DNA of 64,000 nucleotides from Penicillus capitatus (GCA_965649825.1 OZ287696.1:849101-913100); one strand, 5' to 3'; shown: positions 6,720-39,632, counted from the stretch's first letter. Numbers and translations: made by a program. The notes: generated by a model not told the origin, from the letters alone.

Positions 6720-9700
6720 ACTGTCATGATTCTAGCTAACGTTTGTTGTGGACTGAGGCCGCTGTCGTCTGCTTTGCTGTTTTGCCGCTGGAGCTTTTTA
6801 TGGTTTGCTCTACTTTCTAGCTGTCTTTGAAGCTGTCATTATTCCACTGACGTTTTGCTGTGGACGGAGGCTGTCGTTTGACTTGCGATCTTGCTGTGCC
6901 TTGAGGCTGTCATTGTCAGATCTCTTACTTTCCTGCATGGAGGCTGTCGTCCGATCCACTAACTCATTGTGGATGAAAGCTGTCATGGTCTGGTTTGCTA
7001 TTTTGCTGCATGGAGGCTGTTTTGCTCGATTTGTGGTGTTGGCCCTGCCTGCTGTCTTGATCTTTGTGGTTGTCATGGTTCTATTTGCCGTTCACTACCT
7101 GGAGGCTGCTGTTTCCTGCTATTTGTTCTGCCGTGAATGGAGGCTGGAGTGTCCTGTTTGCATGTGCTGCTGAAAGAAAGCCCTTTCCTCTTCTCGATTT
7201 TCTGTCCCAGTATTACATGCTGCAAGACGAGACAAATGGAATGTCGTCTTAAACGCTACAACGAGAAAGTGCTATTCGGACTGTGTCCAATGACATGAAT
7301 AAAGTGAGTCGTTCTTTGTTCACTTTCAGATCCCCGACTGATTTGCCAATGTAGACTGGTCATAAGAAGCAAACAAGTTTGCATAGACTTTGGTCTTTCG
7401 GAAGCCGTGAAGCATTCTTTGGAATTCTGTTGGAATCTGAACCTCGTTTCTGTTTATCAGTGAATGGACAGCTGCGAATCACAATGACCGAGAAAGCATT
7501 GAGCGTGACAAAGGACCGCATGGATTACAGCACACTTACCGACAAAGGAGAGTGAAGAGATCTGTGCTGAATGGATGTGAAGAGAGGCTGTCTTTCGAAC
7601 ATAGGCTCTATTCTGGAACACACCTCTGGCTGCTGAACGACCGACATGGACAGTTATTCGTTGAATCCTTTACAGTAAGGCCTGTCGTGTTTTCTGAATG
7701 CGTTTTGAGTTAGCTAACACAGAGAATGTTCAAAGCAAGGATCCGGTTTGTGCACTTGCAAGACATGAAGAACTTCATAACAAGAGGATCCAGTCGAGCG
7801 AGCATGTGATCACACATCTGCAGAAGAGAGCAAGATACCTGGTATTGAGAAGCGATCTTAAGGCGAAGCAGAACCGGTCTTCACTGCATGAGGCTGGAGT
7901 AGATTTCGCCGACGTGTTTCGGGATCGAGCGAGATGCATGGAAACGTTCGTCTACATGCAGCTGACGCTCTTCAACAACTGAAGCTTTGGTATTTGATAG
8001 CGTGCCTGGATCGATTGAGCTCGAGTTGAGATCTATCAGGGACCGAAGCCTGTTCTGCCCCGAGGACATCATGAGCGACCAGAATCCGTTGTGCTGACCT
8101 GTGTCGAGTACAACCAAGAAATCTGGAGAGCATGTTCGCAGAGTCTGCCTTGAGTCATCCTTGACTCTCTCCGAGGAAACAGAAACCAGCTGCTCAAGAT
8201 CAGAACCAGAAGAGCAGTCGATCTCGTCGGGACCCATGAAATCTGGCATCATGCACGGAGGCGTCCACCTGAGGACAACGCGCGCAGTTTGCTTGACGTA
8301 CCGGGCATTCAGCACTCCGCGGAGAAACTGGGTCGCTTTTGGGAGTGGTCTCTGCGAGGACACGCCTTACCCCAGTTTGAAGATGTCACGCTCCCTCAGA
8401 GAGTTCCTTTGTGTGACCGACGCGAGAGATCTTATGATAAAATCTGGAAAGGACGTTCGGAGAAGACTGCCAGAGTCATCCTTGATCCTCTCAGAGAATG
8501 CGAATAAAATCCATCTGACTGCCAAGACGAGTACGTGAGATTTGATCTGGCTGGGACGCAAGGAACCCAGCTGATGCACAGTCGCATCCATCCAAGGAAA
8601 ACAGGACGTTCCTTCCGGCGACAATGGCATTCTGCACCTTGCAGAGGAGGTGAATTGCATTTGGAGTGAGTGACCTTGCAACAACAAGCATTCCGCCAGC
8701 CGGTTTGAAGATGTCACACTTCTCTGAACTTGCCTGTGTGATTGTCATGAAAGCTCTTCGCAAAAGATTCTGGAAATCACGACTAAAAAGCCTCTCAGAG
8801 TCACTCTTGATGTTCTCGGAAAACGTAAAACGACAACCGTCTGTTCAAAATTGCCAAGATGAAGCAGTGGCTCTTGCCAGAGCGTAAGGAATCCGGTTGA
8901 TCCATGGAAGGATGCATCCAAGTGAAACAAGCGCAGTTTATTCGGCATCACGGGTGTCCAGACCCGGTCAGAGCTGGATTGACTTCCGAGAGAGCGCTGC
9001 AAGAGAAAGCATTTCGGCAGTCTGGAGATGCTACACCTGCCGAGAATTCAATGTGTGCTGACTGGCAGGCAGAGAGTCCTTTCGAATGCTTATGCAAGTG
9101 TATCTCAATAAGCCTTGATGAAATGACGACAATTCTCTACCCACAGGTGAGGTCATTGAAACGACTCTCATGGTTGAATGATGTTTTCCAGGCCCTTTCA
9201 AAGATAGGGGTACTGTTGTCGAGGAAGATGGCCATGCCTCTATCAAGGCAAGATAACAGGCACATCAAGCGTCGAAGCAAAGCGGGTGGCATGATGGCAC
9301 TGTGGTACTTCATGAATGGCAGGTGAAGCTTCGTATGGATATGACCACCAAAGCACACTGACAGAATCTACACTAGCCGTATATCCATGCTCGAATGCCC
9401 AGACGCCCAGAAGAAAACGTACCACCCTCAATGAGGTCATACTTTAAGTCTTAGTGCTCGTTTGATGATGTTCTGACAGACAGTGGAAGAAAGTCTGCCA
9501 AAAAGTGGCGCAACGCATTCAACTGGGATAAGTGATGAAACCCAGCCCAGTCAGGGCTTTTCTGCCAGATGACGATACGTTGTTCACTTGACTGCCGACA
9601 GCCTGCAGCGGACTGGACATCTTTCCCCACTACCGATACCACTGGAAAGGAGATGCCGATCTGTGTACAAAGCGAATCGTCAACGAAACCTGTTGTGGAT

Positions 9701-9851
9701 CAAGACTGCAGAAACCAGTGAGGTCTTAGACTGTTTCAGACATCAACAGTGCCTACTCAAAGGATGCAACCTACAGGTTAGCCATTTATCACTCCCTCTC
9801 CTGTCTAAACGATGTCACAGTCCATGTGCATTAGACGGATCATTATTCTCT
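6720..9851. repeat. Segmental repeat B, copy 1 (degenerate minus-strand coding sequence of unknown repeat protein)
   Basis: Colinear direct-repeat similarity to 17858-20529, both ending at ...GGATCATTATTCTCTG. The minus-strand frames are protein-like but broken by stops and frameshifts. Confidence 0.9.
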
Positions 9852-11639
9852 GTACACCCAGACGCTCTGACTCGGGAACTTCGGCGACGTCATCGAAGGA
9901 ATATCGCGACGACTGTGGGGCAGGTCAGAGATTCGGCAGCGGATACGGCGAGTGAAAACGGACCTTCGGCTGAACCATGACACCGTCGTCATCGACGGCG
10001 CCAACGTCGCAGGATACCGCCGTGAAGAGCCTGGCGAAATCTCTCGAGAATCGTTTCAGGTTGAACGGCATCGCCGATAATATCCTGGCCGTCGTGGTCG
10101 AAAGAGCAGCGGCGGAGAAACCCGTCGTCGCCCGTGTTCTCACGGCAGTTACAGATTCCATCACCTCCCGCAGCGAAGTAGTGACCTATCCCACTCTCCT
10201 GAGCGGACTGATCGCAGCGCGAGCGACAAGGCGCAGGTAGTCCACTGCGACTGCGTGATGCATCCGGGTCGGAGACAGAGAGAAGAAGTTGTCGGCGCAG
10301 GACCACTGTCACGCCGTAAACGTTGCCAGGTACGTTCTAAGATTGAGATAGTCGACAGTAGAGGCCCTTTTGAAGCACTCACGTCGTGGACTCGAAGCCG
10401 CATCACCAGTTCGTAACTGCACCGTCGATTCTCATGGCATGTCAGCCTTCTCTATCGATTTGAAGTACCCCTGCGGGGGATGAAGTGAAGCCCCTACTTC
10501 CTCGAGACAGCACTCGGAAGTGAACAGCGTACCCTTGCATCGAGATCACCGACCGTCTTTCCCTCATCCTGACAGGCAACTTATTCCCTACTGCCACATC
10601 CGGGATCGATGAGCAAAGGTTTCCGTTGCTATACTGCTTTCGACTGTCAAAGTGTTCTTGATCCGATGCGATGCACATCGCACATCCGGCTCTGCTGGGC
10701 TGGCCTTCCTTTCTTTGTATTGAACCTCACCATGTCTCCCTGTCTCCGTGCTTTGTGGGACGGATGGAAGGAGACTCCTTTAAGTATGAAACCTATGACT
10801 TGAAGACGTGCTAATCAGATCGTCTCGAAGGAGGGCGGTCAGAGAGCCAGGAATACGAGGTTGTCTCTCACGGTGCTTGAGCGAAATCGGATCTTGTGAC
10901 GTTTGATCGCGGCTCCTTCTTACACTTCTGCAGAATGTTCAGTGACGTGGCCCACGGCCAGAGAGAGACACACATTGTATCATACCTGCCTTAGATGCGC
11001 ACAGATGAGTCACTCGAGCGACTCCGTCCAATACCGAGTCCCACTACTCACATTGACTACTCGCGATCTCAAAGTGGACAACATCTGACGTAGGCAGGGT
11101 ACATCCAGTCGACGCACAAGCGTGTTTGCGCTTCTCCTCTGTGACGAAGGTAGGTGCGGGAGATCCATTCACCATGAAACGCCGTAACCTTGCATCACTT
11201 TGCGACGTTCGTTCACCTGACATGTGAACCTCAGCCGACACTGTTCTTCTCAGGAGGACCGTCAGACATGTATGTAGCTGAACCATTGGAACAGGACAAT
11301 TCACACTAAAAAAGATGCATGGCGCAGACACCTATGGGCTGTTATCTTGTCGCATGTGCGGTACATGTGATAGCAGCGCGTCTTTCACGGAACCATGACT
11401 TCGTTGAAGACTCTGCGTTAGTGACCATCAACAGCAAAACAACGTACTCCACCGACATTGTTTTCATACTGTTAGAAACGGGGAGAACAGTAGGACCACA
11501 CCTAGATTATCCCCTTTCAGACGCAAGGGTCCAGGAGGCCTGTGTATCTTTAACGAATCTTGCGACAAACGAAGGGGCAAGCATTGCTTCACAAGATCCT
11601 CTCGCCAGCTCTGTCGGGTGACCTGTCAGCCGAGCAGTA

Positions 11640-11820
11640 GATTACTTGAAAGACGGGCTCGGTATAGAATTTCAAGTGCATGATAATCTGTGGGACACGA
11701 CAGAAGGTCAAATGGCCGCGATAGACGCAGGTAGAGACACACCTGATTGAGAGAAATCCCGACAGAGACGCAAGAGAAGAGTGCGGCGATGACTTTCGCT
11801 GCAACGCTGTCGCTTAACAT
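11640..11820 (-). pseudogene. Duplicated exons 1-2 of the TMEM184 gene (MLSDSVAAKV...FYTEPVFQ)
   Basis: Nearly identical to 37325-37504; the rest of TMEM184 is absent here. Confidence 0.85.
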
Positions 11821-11974
11821 GGTTGCGTAACGCACGTGCTGAGTTGAAAATTGATTAACAATGGATGATGCGTCTGAACAGATGTCACATCGAAAAGAAC
11901 GACATGTTTAACAGCTGTCGCATCAGAAAGAACGACATGTTTAACATACACACAAATCAGTAACATCTCACACA

Positions 11975-12460
11975 TCATGTCACAATTAGGAAACAGACTA
12001 GAGCGTTCGTTGGATCCTCTGTCTCACCCAATCCTGTCAAACTCGATTCTGAAGCAGGAACAAGATAGAGAGTGATGTTGAATTCATGGAGATGCACAAC
12101 ACCAGCGGCTTCGCGTTCCTTGAGATGGCTCAGGAGTTTATGAAAGAGGCGATTGGGTGCAGTGGGAGTGATGTAGAAGAAATAATGCTCGAGATCTTTG
12201 ATCTTTGGACCTTCAGCCATTCCGAAAACCGACGTCATGGGAGCTCTTGATTCAATTGTGCGTCGAGGAGGTAATGGAATGGGGCATTCTGCAATGGCAC
12301 CAGCGGCTTCGCATTCACGGAAGAAGATTTTGCCACTCCATGCATCGTCTGGAGGTTGCTGAGGGATGCTTGGCTGGGCCATTTGAGCAAGATTGTCAAC
12401 GGATGTCTTGTACATTTCTTCCAGGGAGGCGAGATGAGGAAGACGACTCGGGTAGGCGTT
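11975..12460 (-). pseudogene. SPOC-like domain coding segment, out of frame with the upstream gene
   Basis: WSGKIFF..LPPRRTIESRA..F.ITP..FHKLLSHLKEREAAGVVHL..TLYLVP matches the FPA/Spen SPOC pattern (W.G.L..F..YL.EK.RAGV.L..TLFLVPP). Confidence 0.65.
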
Positions 12461-12480
12461 GTTCCAGGCTTGGACTGTTA

Positions 12481-12712
12481 TGCCATGTGCAGGACTGCGT
12501 CGATCTGCATCGAGGCAGATCGACGGCAGACTCGTGCACATGGCTGTAGCTATGGGCTGTAGCTATGGCATCTTGAGCCGCCTCCATGTGCAGGACTGCG
12601 TCGATCTGCATCGGGGCAGATCATCGGCAGTCTCATGCACATGGATGTAGCTACGTGCAGGACTGCGTCGATCTGCATCGAGGCAGATCGACGGCAGACT
12701 CATGTACATGCC
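12481..12712. repeat. Triplet of ~70-80 nt palindromic hairpin repeats (array 1)
   Basis: Core GTCGATCTGC-ATCGAG-GCAGATCGAC inside CATGTGCA/TGCACATG arms. Confidence 0.92.
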
Positions 12713-12723
12713 TCCTTCCAAGC

Positions 12724-13540
12724 ATAATTTGGTATGCTTCATCTGTCATGGATTCTGGACGTTCTGATGCAGGACCGTGGATGCGGCTTTCTAGACGGCG
12801 CTTCACTGGAGTGACAAATCCAGGTTGGGCTTCATCTGACATGGATTCTGGACGTTCTGGGACAGAATTGTCAACGGGGCTTGATGGAATGTGCTTCACT
12901 AAAGTGACGAATCCAGGTTGGGCTTCATCCGGCATGGATTCTGGCTATTCTGATGCAGGACCATGGATGTGGCTTGCTGGACGGCGCTTCACTGGAGTGT
13001 CGAATCCAGGTTGGGCTTCATCTGACATGGATTCTGGACGTTCTGGGACAGAATTGTCAACGGGGCTTGATGGACTGTGCTTCACTAAAGTGACGAATCC
13101 AGGTTGGGCTCCGTCTTCGCTTTGCATGCCATATGATTTCTGCATGGCTTCGGAAGGTTCTGATGCAGGATCATGGATGCAGCTCGATGGACTGTTGCGA
13201 TGAAATGGATTGACAAATCCAGTTTCGGCTCTGATCTGCACGGCTTCAGGAGCTTCTGGGAGACGATCGTCGATGTGGCTTGATGGACGGCACGCCATTG
13301 GAGTAACGAATCCAGGTTGGGCTTCGTCTTCGGTCTGCATGGCGTCTGATGTCTGTATGGCTTCAGGAGTTTCTGATGCAGGGCCATGGATGTGGCTCGA
13401 TGGACTGTTGCGATACAAGGGATTGACAAATAAAGTTTCGACTCTGATCTGCACGGCTTCAGGAGCTTCTGGGAGAGGATCGTCGATGTGGCTTGATGGA
13501 CGGAAAGCCATTGGAGTAACGAGTCCAGGTTGGGCTTCAT
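12724..13540 (-). repeat. Coding tandem repeats: 93-bp x4 (alternating subtypes) then 213-bp x2 (DEAQPGFVT motif)
   Basis: Anchor AATCCAGGTTGGGC recurs at ~12817, 12910, 13003, 13096, 13309 and 13522. Confidence 0.9.
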
Positions 13541-16500
13541 CTGCCATATTTTCTGGCAATTCTGGTGCAGGGTTTTCGCTGGCGCTTAACTGGTGGAGTT
13601 GGTGCAGTTGAGTGACATTATCAACGTCTGCTGGAACGGCTTCATGTGACTCAGGTACATGCGCATCATGACGTTGATGATCTGAGTGTTTTCCTGCAGG
13701 ATCCGGCGAGACATACTCAGCTTCATATTGTGTATCTTCTTGTGACACAGGCTCAGGATCGTGGTGATGATCTGAGTATCTTCCTGCAGGGTCCGGTGTG
13801 ACGAACTCGGCTTCGGCTTCGCCTGGTACATACTCTGGTGATCCAGGTTCCGGTGTGGAGAACTCGGCTTCGGCTTCGCCTGGTACATACTCTGGTGATC
13901 CAGGTTCCGGTGTGGAGAACTCGGCTTCGGCTTCGCCTGGTACATACTCTGGTGATCCAGGTTCCGGTGTGGAGAACTCGGCTTCGGCTTCGCCTGGTAC
14001 ATACTCTGGTGATCCAGGTTCCGGTGTGGAGAACTCGGCTTCGGCTTCGGCTGCGGCCCACATGGCTGCAAAAACTGCAGCTACATGATCACGACCTTCG
14101 TTGCTCAATGGACTGTCGTGCACTGAAATGTCGACATCAAACTCGGCCTCGAAATGTCCATGTAAATCATCACCCACCATGCTCATTGGACTGTCGTGCA
14201 CTAGAGTTCCGGCCTCGGCTGCGGCTGGGCCTTGTGCACGTTCTGATATGTCAGGCTCCGGTGTGGCAAACTCGGCTTCGTCTGGGTCATCGTAGTCTGG
14301 TAACTCATCATCGGAATCACTGGGATGGGCGGCCTCGTATTCATGCAAATGCATGAATCTCACTGGCGGGGCTGCATGCAAAGGACGATGCTGCCCTTCC
14401 TCGGTTGTCAAGGCGCCTGGTGTTGAGAATAGACGCGAAAGCTCTTCGATGAGGAGGGACGTCTGGTCATAGTCGTGTCCAGGTTGTTGCTCCACATTAG
14501 GTGCCATGAACATTGGAGGCTCTAGATGGCGGTATTCTCTGCGGCCTGGACAGGTTTCTTCTTGTCCAGCTTGCTCTTCTTCCGCATCTATCATCATCGC
14601 TGTTGAAGGCTCAGCAGCAATGCCTTCTCTAATACTCTGCCAGACATCTTCATCTACAGATTGATGCCTCTCCGGAGCATCTGGCAAGGCTTCAACGGAC
14701 ACATGTGCAGGCTCTTCTAACGGTTGGTTCTGCGCCAGATCAGCTGGCATCACCGTTGAAGATTCGGTAGGAGCGTCTTCTCTATGGCTTGATGGTGCAT
14801 TTTGGTGTCCAGGTTGTTGCTCCACATTAGGTGCCATGAACATTGGAGGCTCTAGATGGCGGTATTCTCTGCGGCCTGGACAGGTTTCTTCATGTCCAGC
14901 TTGCTCTTCTTCCGCATCTATCATCATCGCTGTTGAAGGCTCAGCAGCAATGCCTTCTCTAATACTCTGCCAGACATCTTCATCTACAGATTGATGCCTC
15001 TCCGGAGCATCTGGCAAGGCTTCAACGGACACATGTGCAGGCTCTTCTAACGGTTGGTTCTGCGCCAGATCAGCTGGCATCACCGTTGAAGATTCGGTAG
15101 GAGCGTCTTCTCTATGGCTTGATGGTGCATTTTGGTGTCCAGGCTGTTGCTCTTCTATTTCGGTTGCTGGGACTGTCAAAGACTCGATCACAGGTTCTTC
15201 TCTAGAACTCGAAGAGCGGGTATCTCCAACTTCAGGTTTCTTGTCCTCTACGTTTGTTTTTGTTTCTGTTTTAGGAGCGTCTTCTCTATGGCTTGATGGT
15301 GCATTTTGGTGTCCAGGCTGTTGCTCTTCTATTTCGGTTGCTGGGACTGTCAAAGACTCGATCACAGGTTCTTCTCTAGAACTCGAAGAGCGGGTATCTC
15401 CAGCTTTAGGTTTCTTGTCCTCTACGTTTGTTTTTGTTTCTGTTTTAGGAGCGTCTTCTCTATGGCTTGATGGTGCATTTTGGTGTCCAGGCTGTTGCTC
15501 TTCTATTTCGGTTGCTGGGACTGTCAAAGACTCGATCACAGGTTCTTCTCTAGAACTCGAAGAGCGGGTATCTCCAGCTTTAGGTTTCTTGTCCTCTACG
15601 TTTGTTTTTGTTTCTGTTTTAGGAGCGTCTTCTCTATGGCTTGATGGTGCATTTTGGTGTCCAGGCTGTTGCTCTTCTATTTCGGTTGCTGGGACTGTCA
15701 AAGACTCGATCACAGGTTCTTCTCTAGAACTCGAAGAGCGGGTATCTCCAACTTCAGGTTTCTTGTCCTCTACGTTTGTTTTTGTTTCTGTTTTAGGAGC
15801 GTCTTCTCTATGGCTTGATGGTGCATTTTGGTGTCCAGGCTGTTGCTCTTCTATTTCGGTTGCTGGGACTGTCGAAGACTCGATCACAGGTTCTTCTCTG
15901 GAACTCGAAGAGCGGGTATCTCCAACTTCAGGTTTCTTGTCCTCTACGTTTGTTTTTGTTGCTAGTGAAGACTCAGTTTGACAGTCTTCTCTAAGACTTG
16001 ATGTTTGCGCAGGATAGTAGTTGTCTTCTGGCTTTTCCAGAGATTCTTCACTAATGGAATCCGCTTCTATAATGAAAAAGCAATTTCCACTATGGTTACA
16101 CGACAGGTTCTCTTTACTTTGGGTTGCTGTGTTCGTGTTTTTGTCCTTGGATGCCGCGTTACTTTCATGAGCCTCCGATGTTGTGGATGTTTTGGATTTT
16201 TTCTGAGCTTGCTCGTCTGTACTGTCTCCAGTAATATCTTTCGTTGATGCATCGCACGCGTACGGGGCAGACAAGGACAGAGATCTCGGCTCCACACGAC
16301 GTTTCTGAGTTGTCTCTTCTTCCTGAGGATGTAGATCTGAAGTCGATGTGAATGCATCGTTTCTGGATCTCTTCTTCTGAGAAGGCCGAGGATCCAGATT
16401 CCTAAGAACAGGCTGCAGGTTATGCACATGCTCCATGTACTGAGGGGAGTCCGGACACTCCATGAGCTGTCTGCCTACACAGGTCACACAAAACACATCA

Positions 16501-17382
16501 GTCACGTCGCGTCACATCACTGTGGATCTCACTTTCGATGACGCTGTCGATCCTGTCGAGTGTCCAGGTGCGGAGATCTTTATCGGATTTGTGGATTTCG
16601 TACGCCAGAGTGTATTGATCTGATGTCTCCGGTGGCAGCAGGATGCGATGGAAGAAGTCATAAGCCGATTGATGATACGGCTCGGACATGTCGGTCCAGA
16701 TGCGAAGGCACTCAGACAGGATTTCTCTGGGGTAGCGTGTAAGTCCTTTGGCCAGGACATCCAGAATTGTCCAGCACTCGCGTCCAGGAAGCAGCTCAAT
16801 GTCGATCCCGAGGCTGGTATATGTGTCCTTCATGTACCTGCGGAGTTTGGACGATTGCCTAGGATTACAGACGTCACATCATAAAGTTCGGTGCGAAGTC
16901 GCTTACCGGAAGAGATGCAGGATGATCTTCATGAATTGAGGCCTCACTTCCAGCGTCGTCCAATCCAGCATATCGTCGAAGACGGCCAGTGCCTTGAAAC
17001 GCGTCTCTTCACAGAGACTGCGTCGGTGCTCGCTTCGTGTCTCCGGCCGCCAGGCGCTGATGTTGATCAGCGCCGCCACTGTCGTCTCGATCTTACCTGG
17101 GTACTTTGGAGCCATTCGGATTAATAGCTGCGCGGCCAGACGTTTCGCCTGTGGCGTATCTGACCGCGCATGCTCTAGTACCGTGTCGTACCAGGCATCT
17201 TCGAATGGCCCATCCCCAGGTAAGGCCGCCTTCAACAACGTGAGGATCTGCAGTAGCGTCTGAAGGGGCTGTCGACAGGGCGGCGCCGTCGTCTCGACGG
17301 GATTGCGCCGCGGACGGTTCGTTGGCGGACTCGAAGACGGCTGCGGAGAACGTTTACGTTTACCGCTGGCTTCGTGATCCAT
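12945..17382 (-). CDS. 1447-aa protein: API5 (apoptosis inhibitor 5)-like helical N-terminus plus long acidic disordered tandem-repeat region
   Basis: Exons 17382-16907, 16858-16521 and 16474-12945 are joined in frame by 48- and 46-nt GT-AG introns. AKRLAAQLLIRMAPKYP resembles API5 KRLAAQFIPRFFKHFP, and SAYDFFHRILLP aligns with API5 (REKVLSFIRDKVFP). Confidence 0.7.
13800..14045 (-). repeat. 57-bp coding tandem repeat x4 (AEAEFSTPEPGSPEYVPGE)
   Basis: Identical units at 57-bp spacing. Confidence 0.95.
14476..15960 (-). repeat. 330-bp x2 and 174-bp x5 near-identical coding tandem repeats
   Basis: Anchors at 14479/14809 (330 bp) and 15111/15285/15459/15633/15807 (174 bp). Confidence 0.95.
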
Positions 17383-17857
17383 CCTGAAAAGGAGAACGCG
17401 GAAAAGTCGCTGTTCGCAAAGTTGTCGCAAGAGTTCGCGGGGAAACTCAGTTCGCAAGAGTTCGCAAAGAAACTCAGTTCGCAAGAGCAAACGAACGAAC
17501 AAACGCACAGTCGCTTAAATATACATCAAAATGGACAATTTTCTGTAGATTTTTGTTTGCCGACGTGATGTTAACAGCCAGCCTCGGTATCTAAGCGCGT
17601 CCGCAGCCAATCCCGCGTTTCGATCACCACGAACGAAAACTGAGATCGACGGCATGGAAGGGCAACATGCATCGCCAGATGAGCGATGCGAAGAAGGCAT
17701 GGATCGACCACTCCGTCTGTCTTGCACTCGGCGAAGCTCTCCAGACATGTCGTGGCATGACATCCAGCGTCTATGGTGATTCCGACGTACGTTTGCCAGC
17801 GCCAGAAGGTCGGCTGAATGAGAAAAGGTGAACCACAAGGGTGATGCTGATGATGGC

Positions 17858-20529
17858 TGTCATGATTCTACCTCACGTTTTGCTGTGGATGGCTGGATGC
17901 TATCGTCTGACTTGCTATCTTGCTGTTCCTGGAGGCTGTCATTGTCAGATCTCTTACTTTCCTGCATGGAGGCTGTCGTCCGATCCACTATCTCATTGTG
18001 GATGAAAGCTGTCATGGTCTGGTTTGCTATTTTGCTGCATGGAGGCTGTTTTGCTCGATTTGTGGTGTTGGCCCTGCCTGCTGTCTTGATCTTTGTGGTT
18101 GTCATGGTTCTATTTGCCGTTCACTACCTGGAGTCTGCTGTTTCCTGCTATTTGTTCTGCCGTGAATGGAGGCTAGAGTGTCTTACTTGCATGTGCTGCT
18201 GAAAGAAAGCCCTTTCCTCTTCTGGATGTTCTGTCCCAATAATACCTGACGTAAAACAAGAGAAATGGGATATCGCCTTAAAGGTTGCACCGAGAAAGTG
18301 CTATTCAGATTATGTTCAACGACATGAAAAAAGTGAGTCACTTTTTGTCCATTTTCAGATCCCTGACTCATTTGCCAATGTAGACTGGTCATAAGAAGTA
18401 AACAAGTTTGCATAGACTTTGGTCTTTCGGAAGCCATGAAGCATCCTTTCGCGCTTTGTTAGAGGCTGGACATCGTTCTGTTCTGTGACCGAGAGGGCAC
18501 TGAGTGTGACAGAGGACCGCATGGATTATATCACACTTTCCGACAAAGAAGAGTGAAGAGACTTTGCCTGAATGGACATGAAGAGAGACCGTCTTTCGAG
18601 CGCAGAGTCTATTGGAACACACCTCTGGCTGCTGAACGACCAACATGGACAGTCATCTATCGAATCCTTTACAGTAAGACCTGTCATGTCATCCAACTGT
18701 GTTTCAAGTTAGCCAGTACAGAGAATGCTTAGAGCAAGGATCCGGTTTGTGTACCTAAGAGGTGAAGAACTTCATATCGAGGGGATCCAGTCAACCGAGC
18801 GTCTTCTACGTGCGTCGGCAGAGGAGAGCAACATCTCCGATCTTGATTAGACATCTTCCAGAGAAAGAGAATCGGTCTGCCCTTCATGAGGATGGAGCAG
18901 ATTTCGCTGACGTGTTTTGTGATCTAGCAAGATGCGTGGGAATCTGGTCTACATGCAACTGGTGCACTGTCGCGAATGTGGAGCTTTGGCATTTGATAGC
19001 GTGCCTGGATCGATTGAGCACGAAAGTGGAGATCCATCAGTAACGGAAGACCCTGTCGTTTGAGGATGCCATTTGCGGGAAGAATAAGTTGTGCTGACCT
19101 GTGTCGAGTACAACCAAGGAATCTGGAGAGCATGTTCGCAGAGTCTGCCTTGAGTCATCCTTGACTCTCTCCGAGGAAACAGAAACCAGCTGCTCAAGAT
19201 CAGCACCAGAAGAGGAGTCGATCTCGTCGGGACCCATGGAATCTGGCATCATGCACGGAGGCGTCCGCCTAAGGACAACGTGCACAGTTTGCTTGACACG
19301 CCTGGCATTCAGCACTCCGCGGAGACACTGGGTCGCTTTTGGGAGTGGTCTCTGCGAGGACACGCCTTACCCCAGTTTGAAGATGTCACACTTCTCTGAA
19401 CTTGCTTGTGCGATTGTCATGAAAGCTCTTCGCAAAAGATTCTGGAAAGCACGACTAAAAAGCCTCTCAGAGTCAATCTTGATGTTCTCAGAAAACATAA
19501 AACGACAACCGTCTGTTCAAAATTGCCAAGATGAAGCAGTGGCTCTTGCCAGAGCACAAGGAATCCAGTTGATCCTTGGAAGGACGCATCCAAGTGAAAC
19601 AAGCGCAGTTTATTCGGCATCACGGGTGTCCAGATCCGGTCAGAGCTGGATTGACTTCCGAGAGTCAGCGCTGCAATAGTATACACTCGGCAGTCCGGAG
19701 ATGCCACACCTGCCCAGAATTCGATGTGTGCTGACTGGCAGGCATGCAGTTCATTCCGAATGCACCTGAAAAGCACAACTCAAGAAGCCTTGATGATAAG
19801 ACAACAATTCTTCACCTCACAGGTGAGGTCATTGATACGAACGACTCTTATGGTTGAATGATGTTTCCCAGGCCCTTTCAAAGATAGGGGTACTGTTGTC
19901 GAGGAGAAGGCTATGCCTCTATCAAGGCAAGATAAGGTGTCCATCAAGCATCGAAGCAAAGTGGGTGGCATGATGGCACTGTGGTACTTCATGAATGGCG
20001 TGTGAAGCTTCGTATTGATATAACCTCCAAAGCACACTGACAGAATCTACACTAGCCGTATCCATGCTCGAATTCCCAGACGCCCAGAAGAAAACGTACC
20101 ACCCTCAATGAGGTCACACTTTAAGTCTTAGTGCTCGTTTGATCATGTTCTGACAGACAGTGGAAGAAAGTCTGCCAAAAAGTGACGCAACACATCCGAC
20201 TGGAATAAGTGATGAAACCCAGCCCAGTCAGGGCTTTTCTGCCAGAGGCCGATACGTTGTTCACTTGACTGCCAACAGCCTGCAGCGGACTGGACATCTT
20301 TCCCCACTACCGATACCACTGGAAAGGAGATGCCGATCTGTGTACAAAGCGAGTTGTCAAGGAAGCCTGTCGTGGATCAAAACTACAGAAACCAGTGAGA
20401 TCTGAGACTGTTTCAGACATCAACAGTGCCTACTCAAAGGATGCAACCTACAGGTTAGCCATTTATCACTCCCTCTCCTCTCTAAACGATGTCACAGTCC
20501 ATGTGCATTAGACGGATCATTATTCTCTG
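17858..20529. repeat. Segmental repeat B, copy 2
   Basis: Colinear with 6720-9851 but lacks a 327-bp internal unit. Confidence 0.9.
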
Positions 20530-23784: not shown

Positions 23785-24477
23785 TCAAAGGACAGAAACT
23801 GAATCCGCGGCTGGCATCATCTCCCTCTGCTGCCTCGTCTCGACTCGCCAGCCGAAACACCGAGGAACGGACAGCCACATCGCTCCACTTGCCGGAAGTG
23901 GCGAATGGCGCCGCACCTCTGCCATGTCCACACCTTGCGTCTCCCCGATCTCGGTGTTTCGAACGCGTCCTCCATCGACCGAGTTTGCGTCGGACATCTC
24001 TATCGCCTTTCTGTCGGGAATCCTCGTTGCGAGAGACGGCGACTTGCTTGGAATGGCCAGAGGCGCACTGGGTCCAGCGGCAAACGGATCTGAAGACGCC
24101 GCCGAAAGAGGTGCGCACGGAGGCGAGGCAGGCATCCTGACATCCGGAGGAATGTCGATCGTGACGTCAAGCGGGATACGGAGAGCCGTCTCGTACAGCT
24201 TCCACGCGGAGGTCTCCATCACGCCTTGGCTCGTCAGGCAGTACTTTACAAGATCCTCTCGCCAGCTCTGTCGGGTGTCCTGTCAGCCGAACAGTAGATT
24301 ACTTGAAAGACAGGCTCGGTATAGAATTTCAAGTGCATGATAATCTGTGGGACACGACAGAAGGTCAAATGGCCGCGATAGACGCAGGTAGAGTTACACC
24401 TGATTGAGAGAAATCCCGACAGAGACGCAAGAGAAGAGTGCGGCGATGACTTTCGCTGCAACGCTGTCGCTTAACAT
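23785..24477 (-). CDS. Candidate chimeric gene: TMEM184 exons 1-2 spliced to an unrelated 145-codon Pro/Ser-rich ORF
   Basis: ATG and intron 1 are intact; the intron 2 donor plus acceptor TGTAAAG|TAC puts EPVFQ in frame with YCLTSQGVMETSAWKLY. Expression is unknown. Confidence 0.35.
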
Positions 24478-24871
24478 GGTTGCGTAACGCACGTGCTGAG
24501 TTGAAAATTGATTAACAATGGATGATGCGTCCGAACAAATGTCACATCGAAAGCAAACATGTTTGACACACAGACATCAGCAAAATCTCGCACATCACAT
24601 CACATCACATCACAATCAGGAAACAGAAGAGGGCGTTCATTCGATCCTCTGTGGCAGGCAATTCTGTCAAACGCGGTTCTGAAGCAGGAATAAGATAGGG
24701 AGTGGTGTTGGATTCTCGGAGATGCAGAACACCAGAGGCTTCGTCTGGAGGTTGCTGAGGGACGCTTGGCTGGGCCATTTGAGCAGGATTGTCGACGGAT
24801 GTCTTGTACATTTCTTCCAGGATGGCGAGATATGGAAGACGACTCGGGTAGGCTCGTTGCTCCAGGCTTGG

Positions 24872-25096
24872 ATAGCTATGCCATGTGCAGGACTGCGCCG
24901 ATCTGCATCGAGGCAGATCGACGGCAGACTCGTGCACATGGCAGTAGCTATGGCATTCTGAGCCGCCTCCATGTGCAGGACTGCGCCGATCTGCATCGGG
25001 GCAGATCGACGGCAGACTCGTGCACATGGAGTAGCTACGTACAAGGTCTGCGCCGATCTGCATCGAGGCAGATCGACGGCAGACTCATGTACATGC
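24872..25096. repeat. Triplet of palindromic hairpin repeats (array 2)
   Basis: The first unit ATAGCTATGCCATGTGCA...TGCACATGGCAGTAGCTAT forms an ~80-nt fold-back. Confidence 0.92.
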
Positions 25097-25841
25097 CCTT
25101 GCTAACCATGGGCTGGTCTGCATGCTTCTTGCGCGTCTCCTCCTTCGACCTCCTCAGCCACTCCGGATCCGTCCCGCGTCGTACGCTCGTTCGCTCTCCA
25201 CTTCGGAGACTGTATCCTCCGTCCTGCGCGCAGCATGATGAGAGGGATCCCTGGCAGAAAGGATGGGTACCTCTTGGCAAACTTCTTCGGTCTCTTGTGT
25301 TTTGGCTTCCTGGCAGCTCGAGGTATGACTCTGCCGAGCCTTCTTCTTTTCTTGGTCTCCTTTGCATCTCTGGCAGCCGGCAAGCAGGACTCCATCAGCT
25401 GACGGTGCTGCGAGAAAACGGACTCCAGTCGCATCCAGTAAGCTTCGAGGCCCTCCGCCGTGTCGAGGGCGCATCGAACGTGCCTCCGGTGTGTCGGATT
25501 CGTTCGGTCGACTGCTTCGGGCTCCACGATGATTCCTACAAACGCGGTTGTTTAGCAGACTGTCTTTCGTCTGCGGAGGCGGCGATACCTGTGTCGTGTT
25601 CGATGAACCTCGAGGATTCCAGCAGCCACGCCCCGCTCGTGTTCGCGGAACGCTGCCCTCGATCAGCTGCAGCCGGCAGATGAGGTCGAGCAGATCCGCC
25701 AGCCGGTTGCGGGACAGCCGATCGACGAGGAGCTCGGGCTCCTTCGGCTGCACCTGGTCCATGCGCCGAGCGCGGCGGGCGGTGGACTCGATCCCCTCCG
25801 ACTCCTTGCTCATTCCCACCACCTGGAGGTGGAGATCGGCC

Positions 25842-26930
25842 GGGAAGGAGCTCTGGATCTGCCGGGTCTTGAGCTTCTTCCCAGACGCTGGGGAAGCACG
25901 ACTCGGCGGCGCAAGTGCTTCCCTCCGGCGCCGCAAAGCCGCCGGCCTTCCAGTTGCTGCTAGACACACACCCAAGTGAAACCGAACCAGAGAGAGACGG
26001 AGCACGTACCTTGTGACGAAGAACTTCTTGTGGTTGGAGGAGGCGACGGCTGCGTATCTGGCAAAGCGGCACGTCTTGGATTCGGCCGTGAAGGAGTCCC
26101 GGAGCTGCCGAGGGGTGAAGGCGTAGTCCACCGCGAGCAGTGGACGTGCTCCGTCGACCCCTTCTCCGCAGACGCCTCTTCTCTTGGCGAGGGTTGCGAT
26201 TCCCGGCGAAGGGATAGGTCTTGGACTCGTCCGGGAAGGAGTCCCAGAGCTGCCGGATCTTAAGCTTCTTCCCAGACGCTGGGGAAGCACGACTCGGCGG
26301 CGCAGGTGCTTCTCTCCTCCGCCGCAAAGCCGCCGGCATTCCAGTTGCTGCCAGACACACCCTATGTTAGACCGAACGAAAGAGAGGGAGCACGTACCTT
26401 GGTGACGCAGGGAATTCTTGTGACTGGTGGAGGCGACGGTTGCGTGTGCGGCGAAGCGGTGGGTCTTGGACGCGGCAGGGAAGGAGTCCCAAGAGCTGCC
26501 GAGGTGTAAAGGCGTAGTCCACCGCGAGCAGTGGACGTGCTCCGTCGACCCCTCCTCCTCAGACGCCTCTTCGCTTGGCGACGGTTGCGTGTCCCGGCGA
26601 AGGGGCAGGTCTTGGACTCGGCCGGGAAGGAGTCCCAGAGCTGCCGAGGGGTGAAGGCGTAGTCCACCGCGAGCAGTGGACGTGCTCCGTCGACCCCTCC
26701 TCCTCAGACGCCTCTTCGCTTGGCGACGGTTGCGTGTCCCGGCGAAGGGGCAGGTCTTGGACTCGGCCGGGAAGGAGTCCCAGAGCTGCCGGATCTTGAG
26801 CTTCTTCCCAGACGATGGGGAAGCACGACTCGGCGGCGCAGGTGCTTCTCTCCTCCGCCGCAAAGCCGCCGGCATTCCAGTTGCTGCCAGACACACCCCA
26901 TGTTAGACCGATCCAGAGAGAGAAAGAACA
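25842..26930. repeat. Nested tandem repeats of ~145-bp and ~245-bp units sharing the anchor GGGAAGGAGTCCCAGAGCTGCC
   Basis: Anchor variants at ~25842, 26088, 26233, 26478, 26624 and 26769. Confidence 0.9.
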
Positions 26931-27714
26931 CGTACCTTGGCGGCGAAGGATAAGTTCTTGTCGCTGGAGGACCGCGCCCGAATAAAGTTGTCGTCGAGGG
27001 GTCCTTGAGTGCGCGCTTGGGAAATCGGCGCACAGTCCGGAAAAGCAGAAATGCGAAAACTGGTATGGCGTCGCGCGTTTTGTAGTCGAGGATGTGACAT
27101 TTTCAGCAAATTCGACCGCGGTTAGCCAATCAGAATGCGCGATTCTCTTCGCGGCAGTCTGACGTCAGACGAAAATGGGCCGAACGTCACTTCGCTCGGC
27201 AGGCAACCTACCACATCTCCAGTGGACTGATCTCGAACGGAGAGACATCGAGACGATGAGGGTCGGCATGGCCTCTTCCAGGAAGACCAGATCTCTCGTC
27301 TTCTTGTGCTGCATGGGCAGGCGAATCTGCTCACTACACCCCTTTGCAACCGAGAGACGGATGGAGGCAAAGAGCATGGAGAATGTGACAGACCTTTGGT
27401 GAGTCTTCCCCGTCCCCGACCTCCTGAGACGCGTCGGGAAGCATCCCGGAGTGTACATAGGGTAGAACAGTGAACTGCCTGCGACTTCTTACTCGAGCGC
27501 TTCGGCGCGTCCTCTCGCTATGAAGATTTGGAAGTCGTCGTGGTGGATGTTGACGAGGGACTTCCGTATGAGCGTCTTCAGTTCTGTCCCCAGTCGACGA
27601 CAGCCGTTGATGGGAAGCTCTTCCTCGAGCAAGCTCCAGAAGCGACTCAGAGAGCAACCTTGCATCGGAGCACGCGTTAAGCCTTCGTGCGATAACGCAT
27701 TCGTCGAGACGACG

Positions 27715-35955: not shown

Positions 35956-37504
35956 TTAAACGGACGGTGGTGGTGGTGACTGTCGTTGATGAGATGGCAT
36001 ATCAGACGACGTCTCTTCCTGTGGCTCTACAACCGCTGTCAATTCAGTTTCTTTCCCATCTGGCGGAAACGGAACAGAATCAGAACTGGCCAAGAGATTC
36101 GCACGGTCATGGCAACGTGTCGTCTCTTCTCCTATCTTCACAAAGGTACGAGTTCGGACTGTCTTTCTAAGGCACAAAGGGATGCCGATTGTGAAGTATG
36201 GGACGACGGAGATCGTTACTTGTTGGGTTTCTCTGTCGTATCGTCACTGTAGAGGACATAATCGTGATACTGAGGAGCAAATTGATGGACGGTGTCAGAG
36301 ACCACGTCTCGAATACTGATGGCATGACGCACATTACCGGCGCCAAGATTCGCCTCCATGCCCGATAGCTTGTACTCGTGGTAGGGGAAAGCGTAGAGCA
36401 GCAGAATAGCAGCGAAGAGCATTTCCAAACAGATCAGGAAATTCTGCAGATCCTTTGCAGCTTCGGCTGAATCCAGATAACCCGATGAAGCCATCAAAGA
36501 AATCACAAGGCCCTAGGATCACCCAACGATCACACTTATGCATCAACTTCGACAAAGTGTGACACATCATTACCTGCCAGAAGGTCAGGAAAACCACGGC
36601 CTTGATGAGGACAAATTTCAGAAGGGGTTTGAAGGGTGCAAGCAGTGGCTCGGTTCCTTGATAGAAAACCATCAGAGCATACAGCGCCAGTGTATAGCAG
36701 ATGTTGTACAGCACTTGCACCCACAGATACCTGATCACACATCTGTCACATCAACGCGACATTGAGATACCATACCCGTTGCCGACTCCCCAGTCGCCTT
36801 CTTCATAACGGCGTTCGTTGTTTCCATCTCTTATGTTGTAGAGAACCAACGTTACGAGTGCCAGAATGGGTTTGACTAGAATAAACTGCAGGACCTAATG
36901 TTGCAATGCGTGCGTGTGTGCCTTGTTCACAGTAAAGCACAACATACTCCTTGTTTGCAGCGTCGCAAAAACTGTCCATCGATCGGAGCTCGTGGTAAAC
37001 AGCAGGTGCAGCATAACCAACTGGTCTCCAGCGCTCGGCCTTCACATTTAACTACCACTTCGCCTGGACCTCCCACATATGCTAAACATAGCGCCAGGAA
37101 ATTATACAATATCCACGCTTCATACCTAAAAAACGCCACTCAAGCCTGTCCACTTGGACGGAAAGAGATACAAATCGCGAAATGTATCAAAGTAGATGTG
37201 CTGGTGGTGAAAGACAAGAGAGAGGAACGAAGCTATCGCGTACAGAGGCACCATAAAGATAATCCGAACTATAAATCGCTACACTCCACGCCATCCTGTC
37301 GGTGTCCTGTCAGCCGAACAATAGATTACTTGAAAGACAGGCTCGGTATAGAATTTCAAGTGCATGATAATCTGTGGAACACGACAGAAGGTCAAATGGG
37401 CGCGATAGACGCAGATAGAGACACACCTGATTGAGAGAAATCCCGACAGAGACGCAAGAGAAGAGTGCGGCGATGACTTTCGCTGCAACGCTGTCGCTTA
37501 ACAT
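35956..37504 (-). CDS. TMEM184: TMEM184 / OSTalpha (DUF300) organic solute transporter family, multi-exon
   Basis: HLKFYTEPVFQ|RFIVRIIFMVP, YEAWILYNFLALCLAYVGGPG, KFVLIKAVVFLTFWQ, QNFLICLEMLFAA. Confidence 0.93.
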
Positions 37505-37519
37505 GGTTGCGTAACGCAC

Positions 37520-39632
37520 GTGCTGGGTTGAAAATTGATTAACAATGGATGATGCGTCCGAACAAATGTCACATCGAAAGCAAACATGTTTGACACACAG
37601 ACATCAGCAAAATCTCGCACATCACATCACAATCAGGAAACAGAAGAGGGCGTTCATTGGATCCTCTGTGGCAGGCAATTCTGTCGAACTCGATTCTGTA
37701 GGAGGAATGAGAAAGGGAGTGTGGCGTTCAATTCTCGGAGATGCAGAACACCAGCGGCTTCGTCTGGAGGTTGCTGAGGGACGCTTGGCTGGGCGATTTG
37801 AGCAGGATTGTCGACGGAGGTCTTGGTTCGTTTCTTCCAGGATGGCGAGATGGGGAGGACGACTCGGGGAGGCAGGTTGTTTTCAGGCTTGGATGGTTAT
37901 GCCATGTGCAGGACTGCGTCGATCTGCATCGAGGCAGATCGACGGCAGACTCATGCACATGGCAGTAGCTAGGTCTGCTGTAGCTATGGCCTCCATGTGC
38001 AGGACTGCGTCGATCTGCATCGAGGCAGATCGACAGCAGACTCGTGCACATGGAGTAGCTACGTACAAGGTCTCCGCCGATCTGCATCGAGGCAGATCGG
38101 CGGCAGACTCATGTACATGCCCCTTTTTTCCATGGGCTGCTGTCTGCATGCTTCACGTGCGTCTCCTCCTTCGATCTCCTCGGCCACTCCAGATCCGTCT
38201 TGCGTCTTACGCTCGACTCGCTCTCCTCTCTGGAGACTGCATCCTCCGTCCTGCGCGCAGAGTGAGGAGAGGGATCCCTGGCAAAAAGGATGGGCACCTC
38301 TTGGCAAACGTCTTCGGTCTCTTCTGTTTCGGCTTCCTGGCCGCGCGAGGTATGACTCTGCTGCGTCTTCTTCTTTTCTTGATCTCCTTCGGCTATCTAG
38401 CAGCCGGCAAGCAGGACTCCATCAGCTGACGGAGCTGCGAGAAAACGAACTCTAGTCGCATCCAGTACTCTTCGCACCACTCCGCCGTGTCAAGGGCGCA
38501 TCGAACGTGCCGCCGGTGGGTCGGATTCGTTCCGTCGACTGCTTCGGGTTCCTCGATGACTCCTAGAAACGCAGTTCTGTAGACTGTCCTTCGTCTACGG
38601 AGGCACAGAGAGAACCTGTTTGTGTGCGATGAACCTCGAGGATTCCAGCAGCCGGCAGAGGAGGTCCAGCAGATCCGCCAGCCGGTTGCGGGACAGCCGA
38701 TCGACGAGGAGCTCGAGCTCCTCCGGCAGCACCTGGTCCATGCGCCGATCGCGACGGGCGATGGACTCGATCGCGTCCGGCTCCTTGCTCGTCACCACCA
38801 CTTGGAGGTAGAGGTCGACCGGGAAGGAGTCCCAGAGCTGCCAAGGGGTGAAGGGTGGTCCCACCGCGAGCAGTGGACGTGCTCCGTCGACCCCTCCTCC
38901 AAAAGACGCCTCTTCTCTCTTGGCGACGGTTGCCCATCTGGCGAAGAGGTCGGTCTTGAACTCGGCCGAGACGAAGTCACTGAAGCCGCTGGCCCTCGAA
39001 CTTCTTCCAGGGACGCTGGGGACGCACAACTCGGCGGCGCAGGTGCTTCCCTCTGCCGAAAAGCCGCCGGCCTTCGAGTTGCTACAAGACACACACAACT
39101 GAAACCAATCCAGACGATCATGTATGCACGTACCTTGGTGACGCCGACCGGGAAGGAGTCCCAGAGCTGCCGAGGGGCGAAGGCGTAGTCCGCAGCGAGT
39201 AGTGGCGCATAGTTCGGAAAAACGGAAATGCGAAAACTGGTATGGCGTCGCGCGTTTTGTAGTCGAAGATGTGACAGCTGCAACAAATTCGACCGCGGGT
39301 TGCCAATCAGAATGCGCGATTCTCTACACAGCAGTCTGACGTCAGACGAAAACGGGTCGAACGTCACTTCGCTCGGCAGGCAACCTACCACATCGCCAGT
39401 CGATCACAACGAACGAAAACCGAGATTGACAATATGGAAAGGCAACATTCATCGCCGGCTGAGTGATGTGAAGAAGGCATGGACTACTCCACGTGTCTTG
39501 CATTCGACAGAGATCTCCAGACATGTCGTGGCATAACATCCAGCGTCTGTGATGACTCCGACTTATGTTTGCCATCACCAGAGGTCAGTTGAATGGGAGG
39601 CGGTGAACCACAGGGGTGATGCTGATGATGGC
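37520..39632 (-). pseudogene. Cassette A copy 3 at the native locus: degenerate helical-domain fragment, hairpins and internally deleted SPOC-like segment
   Basis: Colinear with copy 2 up to ~39400 and with the right end of copy 1 beyond it; carries stops and a 1-nt frameshift relative to copy 2. Confidence 0.75.
37900..38120. repeat. Triplet of palindromic hairpin repeats (array 3)
   Basis: Same unit as arrays 1 and 2. Confidence 0.92.

Follow-up and report, generated by a model that had tools for sequence, protein, structure and literature searches.

The segment analysed here, referred to as the window, is a 64,000-nucleotide stretch of DNA from Penicillus capitatus (GCA_965649825.1 OZ287696.1:849101-913100), and our subject is a gene at positions 11,975-17,382 that encodes an API5-like N-terminal domain (hereafter the N-domain) and is followed, behind a stop codon, by a separate open reading frame (ORF) with a SPOC-like domain. 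All parts of the gene are on the minus strand. A frame of 1447 codons begins with an ATG at 17382-17380, is assembled from three ORFs by two short GT..AG introns, and ends with a TAG at 12947-12945; the initial annotation of this DNA had proposed the same two introns and the same product length, and both are confirmed. Exon 1 (16907-17382) carries the start codon, a basic KRKRSP stretch and the first half of the N-domain, and exon 2 (16521-16858) encodes the second half of this all-helical domain and is conserved in Caulerpa P0014 and in another family member, P0013. Intron 1 (16859-16906; 48 nt, GTAAGC..CCTAG) contains in-frame stops, and there is a 48-nt GT..AG insert at the matching position in L001, one of two related metagenomic loci (L001 and L002) described below. 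Intron 2 (16475-16520) is 46 nt long (GTGATG..TGTAG). Exon 3 (12945-16474) carries a second basic stretch, KKRSRN, and then an acidic low-complexity region. Most of the exon is composed of tandem repeats, which amount to about 1000 amino acids of acidic, lineage-specific sequence. The repeats are of five families (174 nt x5, 330 nt x2.1, 57 nt x4.7, 213 nt x2.8 and 93/186 nt x4), the periods are all multiples of three, and a Pfam search of the repeat region gave no match. The KRKRSP and KKRSRN stretches look like nuclear-localisation signals, and the predicted product is probably an acidic nuclear protein of 1447 residues in which the API5-like domain is present and RRM and SPOC domains are absent.

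The main frame stays open beyond the TAG for a further 97 codons (12651-12944), close to the 98 or so counted initially, up to a second TAG at 12653-12651. This part of the repeat array has homologous coding sequence in L001 and L002. It runs into a palindrome array (12483-12707) of three imperfect 57-nt units (12707-12651, 12640-12584 and 12539-12483), and this in turn is followed by a linker remnant (12401-12482) from which an 85-codon stretch ('APTDP...FIRQQSLLLDAY...'), present in L001, L002 and a second copy of the gene, L003, has been deleted with a change of frame. The final element, on the same strand as initially described, is an intact 188-codon ORF (11975-12541; ATG at 12541, stop TGA at 11977-11975) in a frame that differs from that of the main ORF. 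Its first 45 residues are former linker sequence read out of frame, and the SPOC domain itself lies at about 12355-11978, with 74% identity to the C-terminus of L001. We also note that a segment of about 400 bp directly 3′ of the SPOC stop (window 11578-11975; L001 15868-16230; L002 15816-16200) is conserved, being kept in all copies and in both relatives with 78-86% identity when translated; it could represent a 3′ untranslated element or a small gene on either strand. An Rfam scan of the whole window matched no family.

With the window sequence alone, Pfam reports API5 (PF05918) as the top match for the N-domain (13 bits, E-value 0.047) and SPOC (PF07744) as the top match for the downstream ORF (16.2-16.7 bits, E-value 0.01), both under the gathering scores of 27.4 and 25 bits, respectively. 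The PF05918 scores range from 11-13 bits for the window to 22.4 bits for the best family member and cover only model positions ~4-70 of 536, and the sub-threshold match recurs at this same model region in five family members. Profiles made from four orthologous sequences of either end found neither API5 nor SPOC among the PDB sequences. An exhaustive profile search with the N-domain identified more distant relatives, from which deeper family profiles were built, and the resulting 10-sequence N-domain profile matches API5 alone in the PDB (3v6a, 3u0r and 6l4o, E-values 4-5.5e-8; the next match has an E-value of 0.3). The alignment pairs profile positions 4-124 with residues 7-125 of API5 and goes no further than residue 125. 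An hhalign comparison of the N-domain profile with human API5 gives a probability of 92% (E-value 5e-7, 69 columns). The AlphaFold2 model of the window N-domain is all-helical, with a mean per-residue confidence (pLDDT) of 62.8, and a Foldseek search with this model returned mostly generic HEAT/ARM proteins, with API5 (3v6a) second in rank and first by TM-score (0.42); an E-value of 0.001 or lower was not reached by any match, the best being 0.025. On the profile alignments, we take the initial HEAT repeats of API5 and the first half of the N-domain to be homologous. We regard the window protein as a carrier of an API5-N-like domain and not as an API5 orthologue, because the Pfam scores are sub-threshold over model positions ~4-70 and the profile alignment ends at API5 residue 125.

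At the other end of the gene, SPOC is the sole Pfam family matched in three of the four orthologues (best E-value 1.3e-4), and one algal homologue (P0017) clears the SPOC gathering score, with 30.3 bits against 25, over model positions 9-152. A six-sequence C-terminal profile matches the SPOC domain of FPA in the PDB (5kxf, E-value 5.8e-5, 114 columns) and, more weakly, those of RBM15 (7z27, E-value 0.032) and PHF3 (6ic8, E-value 0.11). In a hidden Markov model alignment, the Arg of the window motif TIESRAPM, which is also present in L001, L002 and P0017, aligns with FPA R477 (chain numbering checked against K447, T478 and H486 as in PMC4981400). FPA R477 is equivalent to SPEN R3552 and PHF3 R1248, and this residue is essential for phosphoserine binding (PMC10111866). 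FPA residues Y515, R521 and K447 are replaced in this lineage by His, Ala and Phe, and the basic patch is only partly left. By these matches the 188-codon ORF is taken to encode a SPOC domain. Elsewhere in the window there is an ORF (49436-50263, minus strand) with a strong match to the Ku70/Ku80 beta-barrel (E-value 1.9e-28); Ku and SPOC are members of one structural clan, but this is an unrelated neighbouring gene.

Word-indexed homology searches found near relatives from the same few metagenomes only, and the named homologues are all from green algae: Caulerpa lentillifera (P0014), Scenedesmus sp. PABB004 (P0017, KAF8056742.1) and Dunaliella salina (P0018, KAF5842240.1). Within their N-domains, L001 and L002 are 62% and 52% identical to the window, respectively. 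In both loci the N-domain, RRM exons and final ORF are colinear on one strand, and the final ORF is uninterrupted, passing from the repeats through a single in-frame 59-nt hairpin unit and a linker of about 100 amino acids (…AFSMFQEDGQ…FIRQQSLLLDAY…) into the SPOC domain. Approximately 1 kb of sequence lies between the N-domain and the final ORF in L001 and L002 and is absent from the window. This segment aligns with the RRM region of Caulerpa P0014 and P0013, and tblastn searches with the RRM regions of these two proteins identify exons in L001 (11347-11833) and L002 (11529-11702) and none in the window or L003. A profile of the segment matches almost exclusively RRM structures in the PDB (best E-value 9.4e-6). 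Pfam RRM_1 matches are seen in P0013 and P0014 (E-values 0.001-0.015), and the L001 RRM exon alone gives no Pfam match. In Caulerpa P0014, the N-domain, RRM and SPOC are within one protein of 665 amino acids, in which the Pfam matches are sub-threshold (RRM_1 E-value 0.015, SPOC E-value 0.008). We also note that the segment missing from the window (L001 10889-11930, L002 11030-12100) encodes a further conserved stretch, …RNVLIRIQEAERKRE…LPPTGPVPYAPQIPATPIDDP…, with no Pfam match; it is in a frame other than that of the RRM exon, which points to further short introns in L001 and L002.

From the colinearity of L001 and L002 together with the RRM identity of the 1-kb segment, the predicted architecture of the family is API5-N-like + RRM + SPOC, that is, an RRM-SPOC protein of the Spen type that has, in addition, an API5-like domain at its N-terminus. 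The initial annotation had recognised API5-like and SPOC-like parts at the two ends, and both identifications hold with the deeper profiles. It had also proposed an ancestral or full API5-SPOC fusion, and this is borne out in so far as L001 and L002 carry both ends colinearly and Caulerpa P0014 has both in one protein; the RRM between the two ends was missed. The architecture had been considered unrecognised, but the combination has already been described for plants (Appel et al. 2023, Genes Dev 37:140, PMC10111866). A further suggestion, that the gene could couple RNA processing to mRNA export or defence, finds no counterpart here, as nothing in the analysis links the window product to either.

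We consider it likely that the window gene is a degenerate member of this known API5-RRM-SPOC family, and not an API5-SPOC fusion, and that it is a dispersed, lineage-specific duplicate. The lesions are of several types. The RRM segment is missing at about position 16415, where the junction reads HVHNL|QPVLRNLD, and the window copy is without the RRM and C-terminal SPOC in one protein that characterise Spen-type factors. The TAG stop codon falls inside the terminal repeat array. The hairpin has been amplified to three units of 57 nt, each of which is 2 nt shorter in the loop than the 59-nt coding version, so that every unit introduces a -2 frameshift. In the linker, 85 codons have been lost and the frame has changed. 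The SPOC domain is consequently not on the same polypeptide as the N-domain in the window, whereas in L001 and L002 one ORF leads into it. We also considered a variant genetic code in which TAG is read as sense, and rejected it: stop-codon usage is ordinary, ORFs terminated by TGA only are hardly longer, and the frame is in any case closed by TGA codons ahead of the SPOC. The genetic code appears to be standard.

The palindrome of approximately 57-59 nt is within coding sequence and sits exactly at the site where the gene is rearranged. It is found at 12483-12707 in the window, 14962-15110 in L001, 14750-14895 in L002, and at both 14490-14548 and 15693-15919 in L003. The intact relatives have a 59-nt in-frame unit coding for VHESA.DLPLDADRRSPAHG, and the decayed copies have amplified 57-nt versions of it. 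Thirteen units extracted by alignment from L001, L002, L003 and the window share a 21-bp stem in which 90% of the alignment cells are paired, and five pairs have changed on both sides across the loci, i.e. in a compensatory manner. The covariation score was reached by none of 500 shuffles, and control segments slid along the sequence pair at only 26-48%. These values come from few independent hairpin lineages, and processes acting at the DNA level can also maintain palindromes. A search for the hairpin core with an 8-nt loop spacing gave a match only at chance level; most of the window units have a 6-nt loop, and the search pattern was mis-specified. The hairpin is conserved across loci in which synonymous sites are near saturation, and we entertain, as a rather doubtful proposal, that it is a functional cis-element upstream of SPOC, either an autoregulatory RNA structure or a DNA palindrome that drives recombination, whose amplification would have created a shuffling cassette of hairpin, SPOC and 3′ flank. 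If so, the 3′ cassette, which in two further copies (see below) is now joined to unrelated GC-rich DUF7647 sequences, may form new chimeric genes.

Both the window and L003 are on the ENA metagenome contig ERZ25074695:ctg340460 (844,522 bp). L003 (774,201-794,806 in the sequence record) is a second full copy, inverted tail-to-tail relative to window 9845-17856 with about 53 kb between the 3′ ends, and the flanks of the two copies share 96-99% identity. It has a stop at the same codon as the window (TGA in L003, TAG in the window), an extra internal duplication that keeps the linker, and a frameshifted SPOC segment that has diverged by about 10%. Two partial copies of the 3′ module are present within the window, both on the minus strand and 83-89% identical to the 3′ module of the main copy. 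Copy B (24235-25097) comprises the downstream flank, a SPOC with a 228-bp deletion in its core and a hairpin array, and is joined to GC-rich DUF7647 repeats at 25100-26900. Copy C (37289-38125) has the same 228-bp deletion and is syntenic with the intact L002 gene. Window segments 48899-39699 and 37575-32357 show synteny with the genes on either side of L002, and this places the ancestral site at about 37.3-39.6 kb, where only a remnant, copy C, is now left. The site contains a copy of the 5′ flank (39400-39632, minus strand, 83% identical to 17620-17857), a GC-rich insert containing DUF7647, and copy C.

The repeats adjoining copy B (25100-26971) and copy C (38126-39403) have a GC content of 57-60%, and near copy B there are internal tandem repeats of 391 and 145 nt. 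ORFs within this sequence exceed the Pfam cut-off of 27 bits for DUF7647, scoring 33.2 and 28.9 bits, and the sequence could be a mobile element or the body of a chimeric gene. Further duplications within the window flank the gene, with 9014-9852 matching 19687-20529 (92% identity) and 17856-19000 matching 6832-8001 (83%). Around the gene, the contig is a mosaic of recently duplicated segments. A further copy of the family, also decayed, is at 8189-10639 of L005, a contig from the same sample (ctg340516_41x), and includes the 5′ flank, scraps of the N-domain, the linker, and a SPOC segment with 76% identity whose C-terminus is frameshifted. The family is breaking up in this genome.

Comparisons between species give dN/dS values of 0.27-0.44 for the N-domain and 0.22-0.36 for SPOC, with 0.22-0.28 for the SPOC domain of the window against its relatives. 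The genes are fast-evolving yet constrained; flanking genes are far better conserved, with 75-95% amino-acid identity, as compared with 52% for the N-domain. Set against L003, the window copy has 28 non-synonymous differences and 14 synonymous ones (pN/pS 0.58, one-sided p = 0.07), and the probability under neutrality that both 4.3-kb ORFs would have stayed open is about 0.035. These values are weak evidence that the truncated ORF is still maintained. Two readings of its status remain, one in which the product is in use (as a scaffold or decoy, for example), for which the evidence is weak, and the other in which it is a young pseudogene.

A plausible history begins with a green-lineage gene encoding API5-N-like, RRM and SPOC domains, which would have been a nuclear RNA-processing factor of the Spen/FPA type with an extra HEAT-like domain. 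By analogy with Spen/FPA proteins and API5, the HEAT-like domain of the intact proteins would dock partners, the RRM would bind RNA, and the SPOC would read phosphoserine motifs, either in the C-terminal domain of RNA polymerase II or in partner proteins. Dispersed duplication would then have given rise to the window copy, in which the N-domain was kept under some constraint, the RRM-encoding segment of about 1 kb was lost, and the acidic tandem repeats expanded, such that the gene now ends at TAG 12945. The sequence past the stop would be the detached former 3′ end, composed of the tail of the repeat array, amplified and frameshifted palindromes, a linker with a deletion, and the intact SPOC ORF. 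The truncated product might at most serve as a scaffold or competitor.

Several other explanations account for parts of these data. That the SPOC ORF (ATG 12541 to TGA 11975) is expressed alone as a small SPOC protein seems to us unlikely, even though it is an intact ATG-started ORF with a conserved domain, low dN/dS and the key Arg kept, and is followed by the ~400 bp past the stop conserved in all copies and in L001 and L002. The ATG is inside a palindrome unit, its frame is a product of decay, and over the first 45 residues the ORF reads former linker out of frame. In L003, copy B, copy C and L005, the equivalent ORFs have undergone frameshifts or deletions. Survival of such an ORF is expected by chance at ~1-2% divergence. 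Less probable still is a window gene that continues to function as an API5-SPOC fusion, its two frames being joined by a long intron, by reading through the stop codon or by frameshifting programmed at the hairpins. The SPOC ORF does remain intact over 188 codons with its key Arg and a dN/dS of 0.25 against L001, and strong hairpins do lie between the two frames; however, a joining intron would have to be at least ~380 nt long, as compared with 46-48 nt for the known introns, and none of the 102 frame-compatible GT..AG pairs between the main ORF and the SPOC frame has a donor like the known ones. Readthrough or reassignment of TAG alone falls short of SPOC, with TGA codons also closing the frame past the TAG and the stop-codon usage of the genome being ordinary. 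Moreover, the paralogue L003 combines a stop at the same codon with a frameshifted SPOC, and copies B and C carry the SPOC-core deletion.

We give very little credence to an assembly or sequencing artefact at the break between the repeats and SPOC, with the real gene being continuous. The region is rich in tandem repeats and palindromes and the contig is metagenome-assembled, yet the independently assembled L003 has its stop at the same codon with a different triplet (TGA rather than TAG), the frameshifting 57-nt unit recurs in the arrays of the window, copy B, copy C and L003, and copies B and C, together with three other contigs (P0006, P0007 and P0009), have the linker deletion as well. The 96-99% identity of the window and L003 flanks gives no sign of collapse. 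Equally improbable, in our estimation, is that this is a fast-evolving orphan gene whose similarity to API5 and SPOC reflects chance matches to profiles of helical-repeat and beta-rich families. Such matches could explain why both Pfam scores are below gathering on the window sequence alone, why the four-sequence profiles found neither family in the PDB, and why Foldseek E-values are no better than 0.025. They would not account for the specific and exclusive matches of the deeper profiles (API5 at E-value 4e-8, and the SPOC domains of FPA, RBM15 and PHF3), for P0017 clearing the Pfam SPOC threshold over the whole model, or for the RRM between the two domains in the relatives, and the three-domain combination is exactly that described for plants.

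There are also observations that weigh against a degenerate API5-RRM-SPOC gene as the explanation. The structure model of the N-domain is of only moderate quality (pLDDT 62.8), and the AlphaFold2 model of the SPOC segment, from a six-row alignment, is not usable (pLDDT 45, predicted TM-score 0.33) for recognising the distorted seven-stranded beta-barrel of SPOC domains. The gene models of L001 and L002 are provisional in the interval that separates the N-domain from the final ORF, where several frames and stops suggest further introns. L001 is from the same sample, at a coverage of 22x as compared with 36x, and may derive from a different organism or be a paralogue within one genome. For the window gene, splicing, 3′ ends and expression are all predictions from sequence. 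The intact SPOC ORF, with its dN/dS of 0.25 against L001, would also suit continued use, although a low ratio is equally expected if detachment was recent, because most of the divergence predates the break. The intact ORF is uninformative on selection over so short a time.

With the window gene read as a degenerate copy, its chlorophyte relatives (in Caulerpa, Scenedesmus, Dunaliella and uncultured relatives) are added to the little-studied API5-RRM-SPOC branch of SPOC proteins, and only the first HEAT repeats of API5 are common to API5 and this family. The copies also outline a course of decay within one lineage, comprising duplication, loss of the RRM, expansion of repeats, and detachment of SPOC at the palindrome. 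In practical terms, annotation of the window locus as an API5-SPOC fusion is to be avoided. What a Spen-type factor gains from an API5-like domain is a question that could reasonably be pursued in this family; the window copy itself is ordinary in kind and opens no new question, and is of mild interest as a case of domain loss and module shuffling.

Among known systems, the closest is the plant API5-RRM-SPOC family (Appel et al. 2023). The same domain order is found in L001, L002, Caulerpa P0014 and Scenedesmus P0017, and the homologues, those with names being green algae, would place it in the same lineage (Viridiplantae/Chlorophyta). The window copy differs from this family in being without the RRM, in having its SPOC behind a stop, frameshifts and a deletion, and in the addition of about 1000 amino acids of acidic repeats. 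The API5 similarity is confined to the first 70-120 residues of API5. The plant family may include Arabidopsis SPEN3 (At1g27750). With API5/AAC-11/FIF (PF05918; PDB 3U0R, 3V6A) the family shares N-terminal HEAT repeats that include the motif KRLAAQ..P+..YP, but API5 is a stand-alone protein of about 500 amino acids with HEAT and ARM-like repeats, whereas the helical domain of the window protein is about 235 amino acids long and its first half alone is detectably API5-like. With Spen and Arabidopsis FPA (PDB 5KXF) the points in common are that the FPA SPOC is the best match among solved structures, that the Arg equivalent to FPA R477 is kept, and that an RRM is upstream in the relatives; FPA differs from this family in having three N-terminal RRMs and no API5-like domain.

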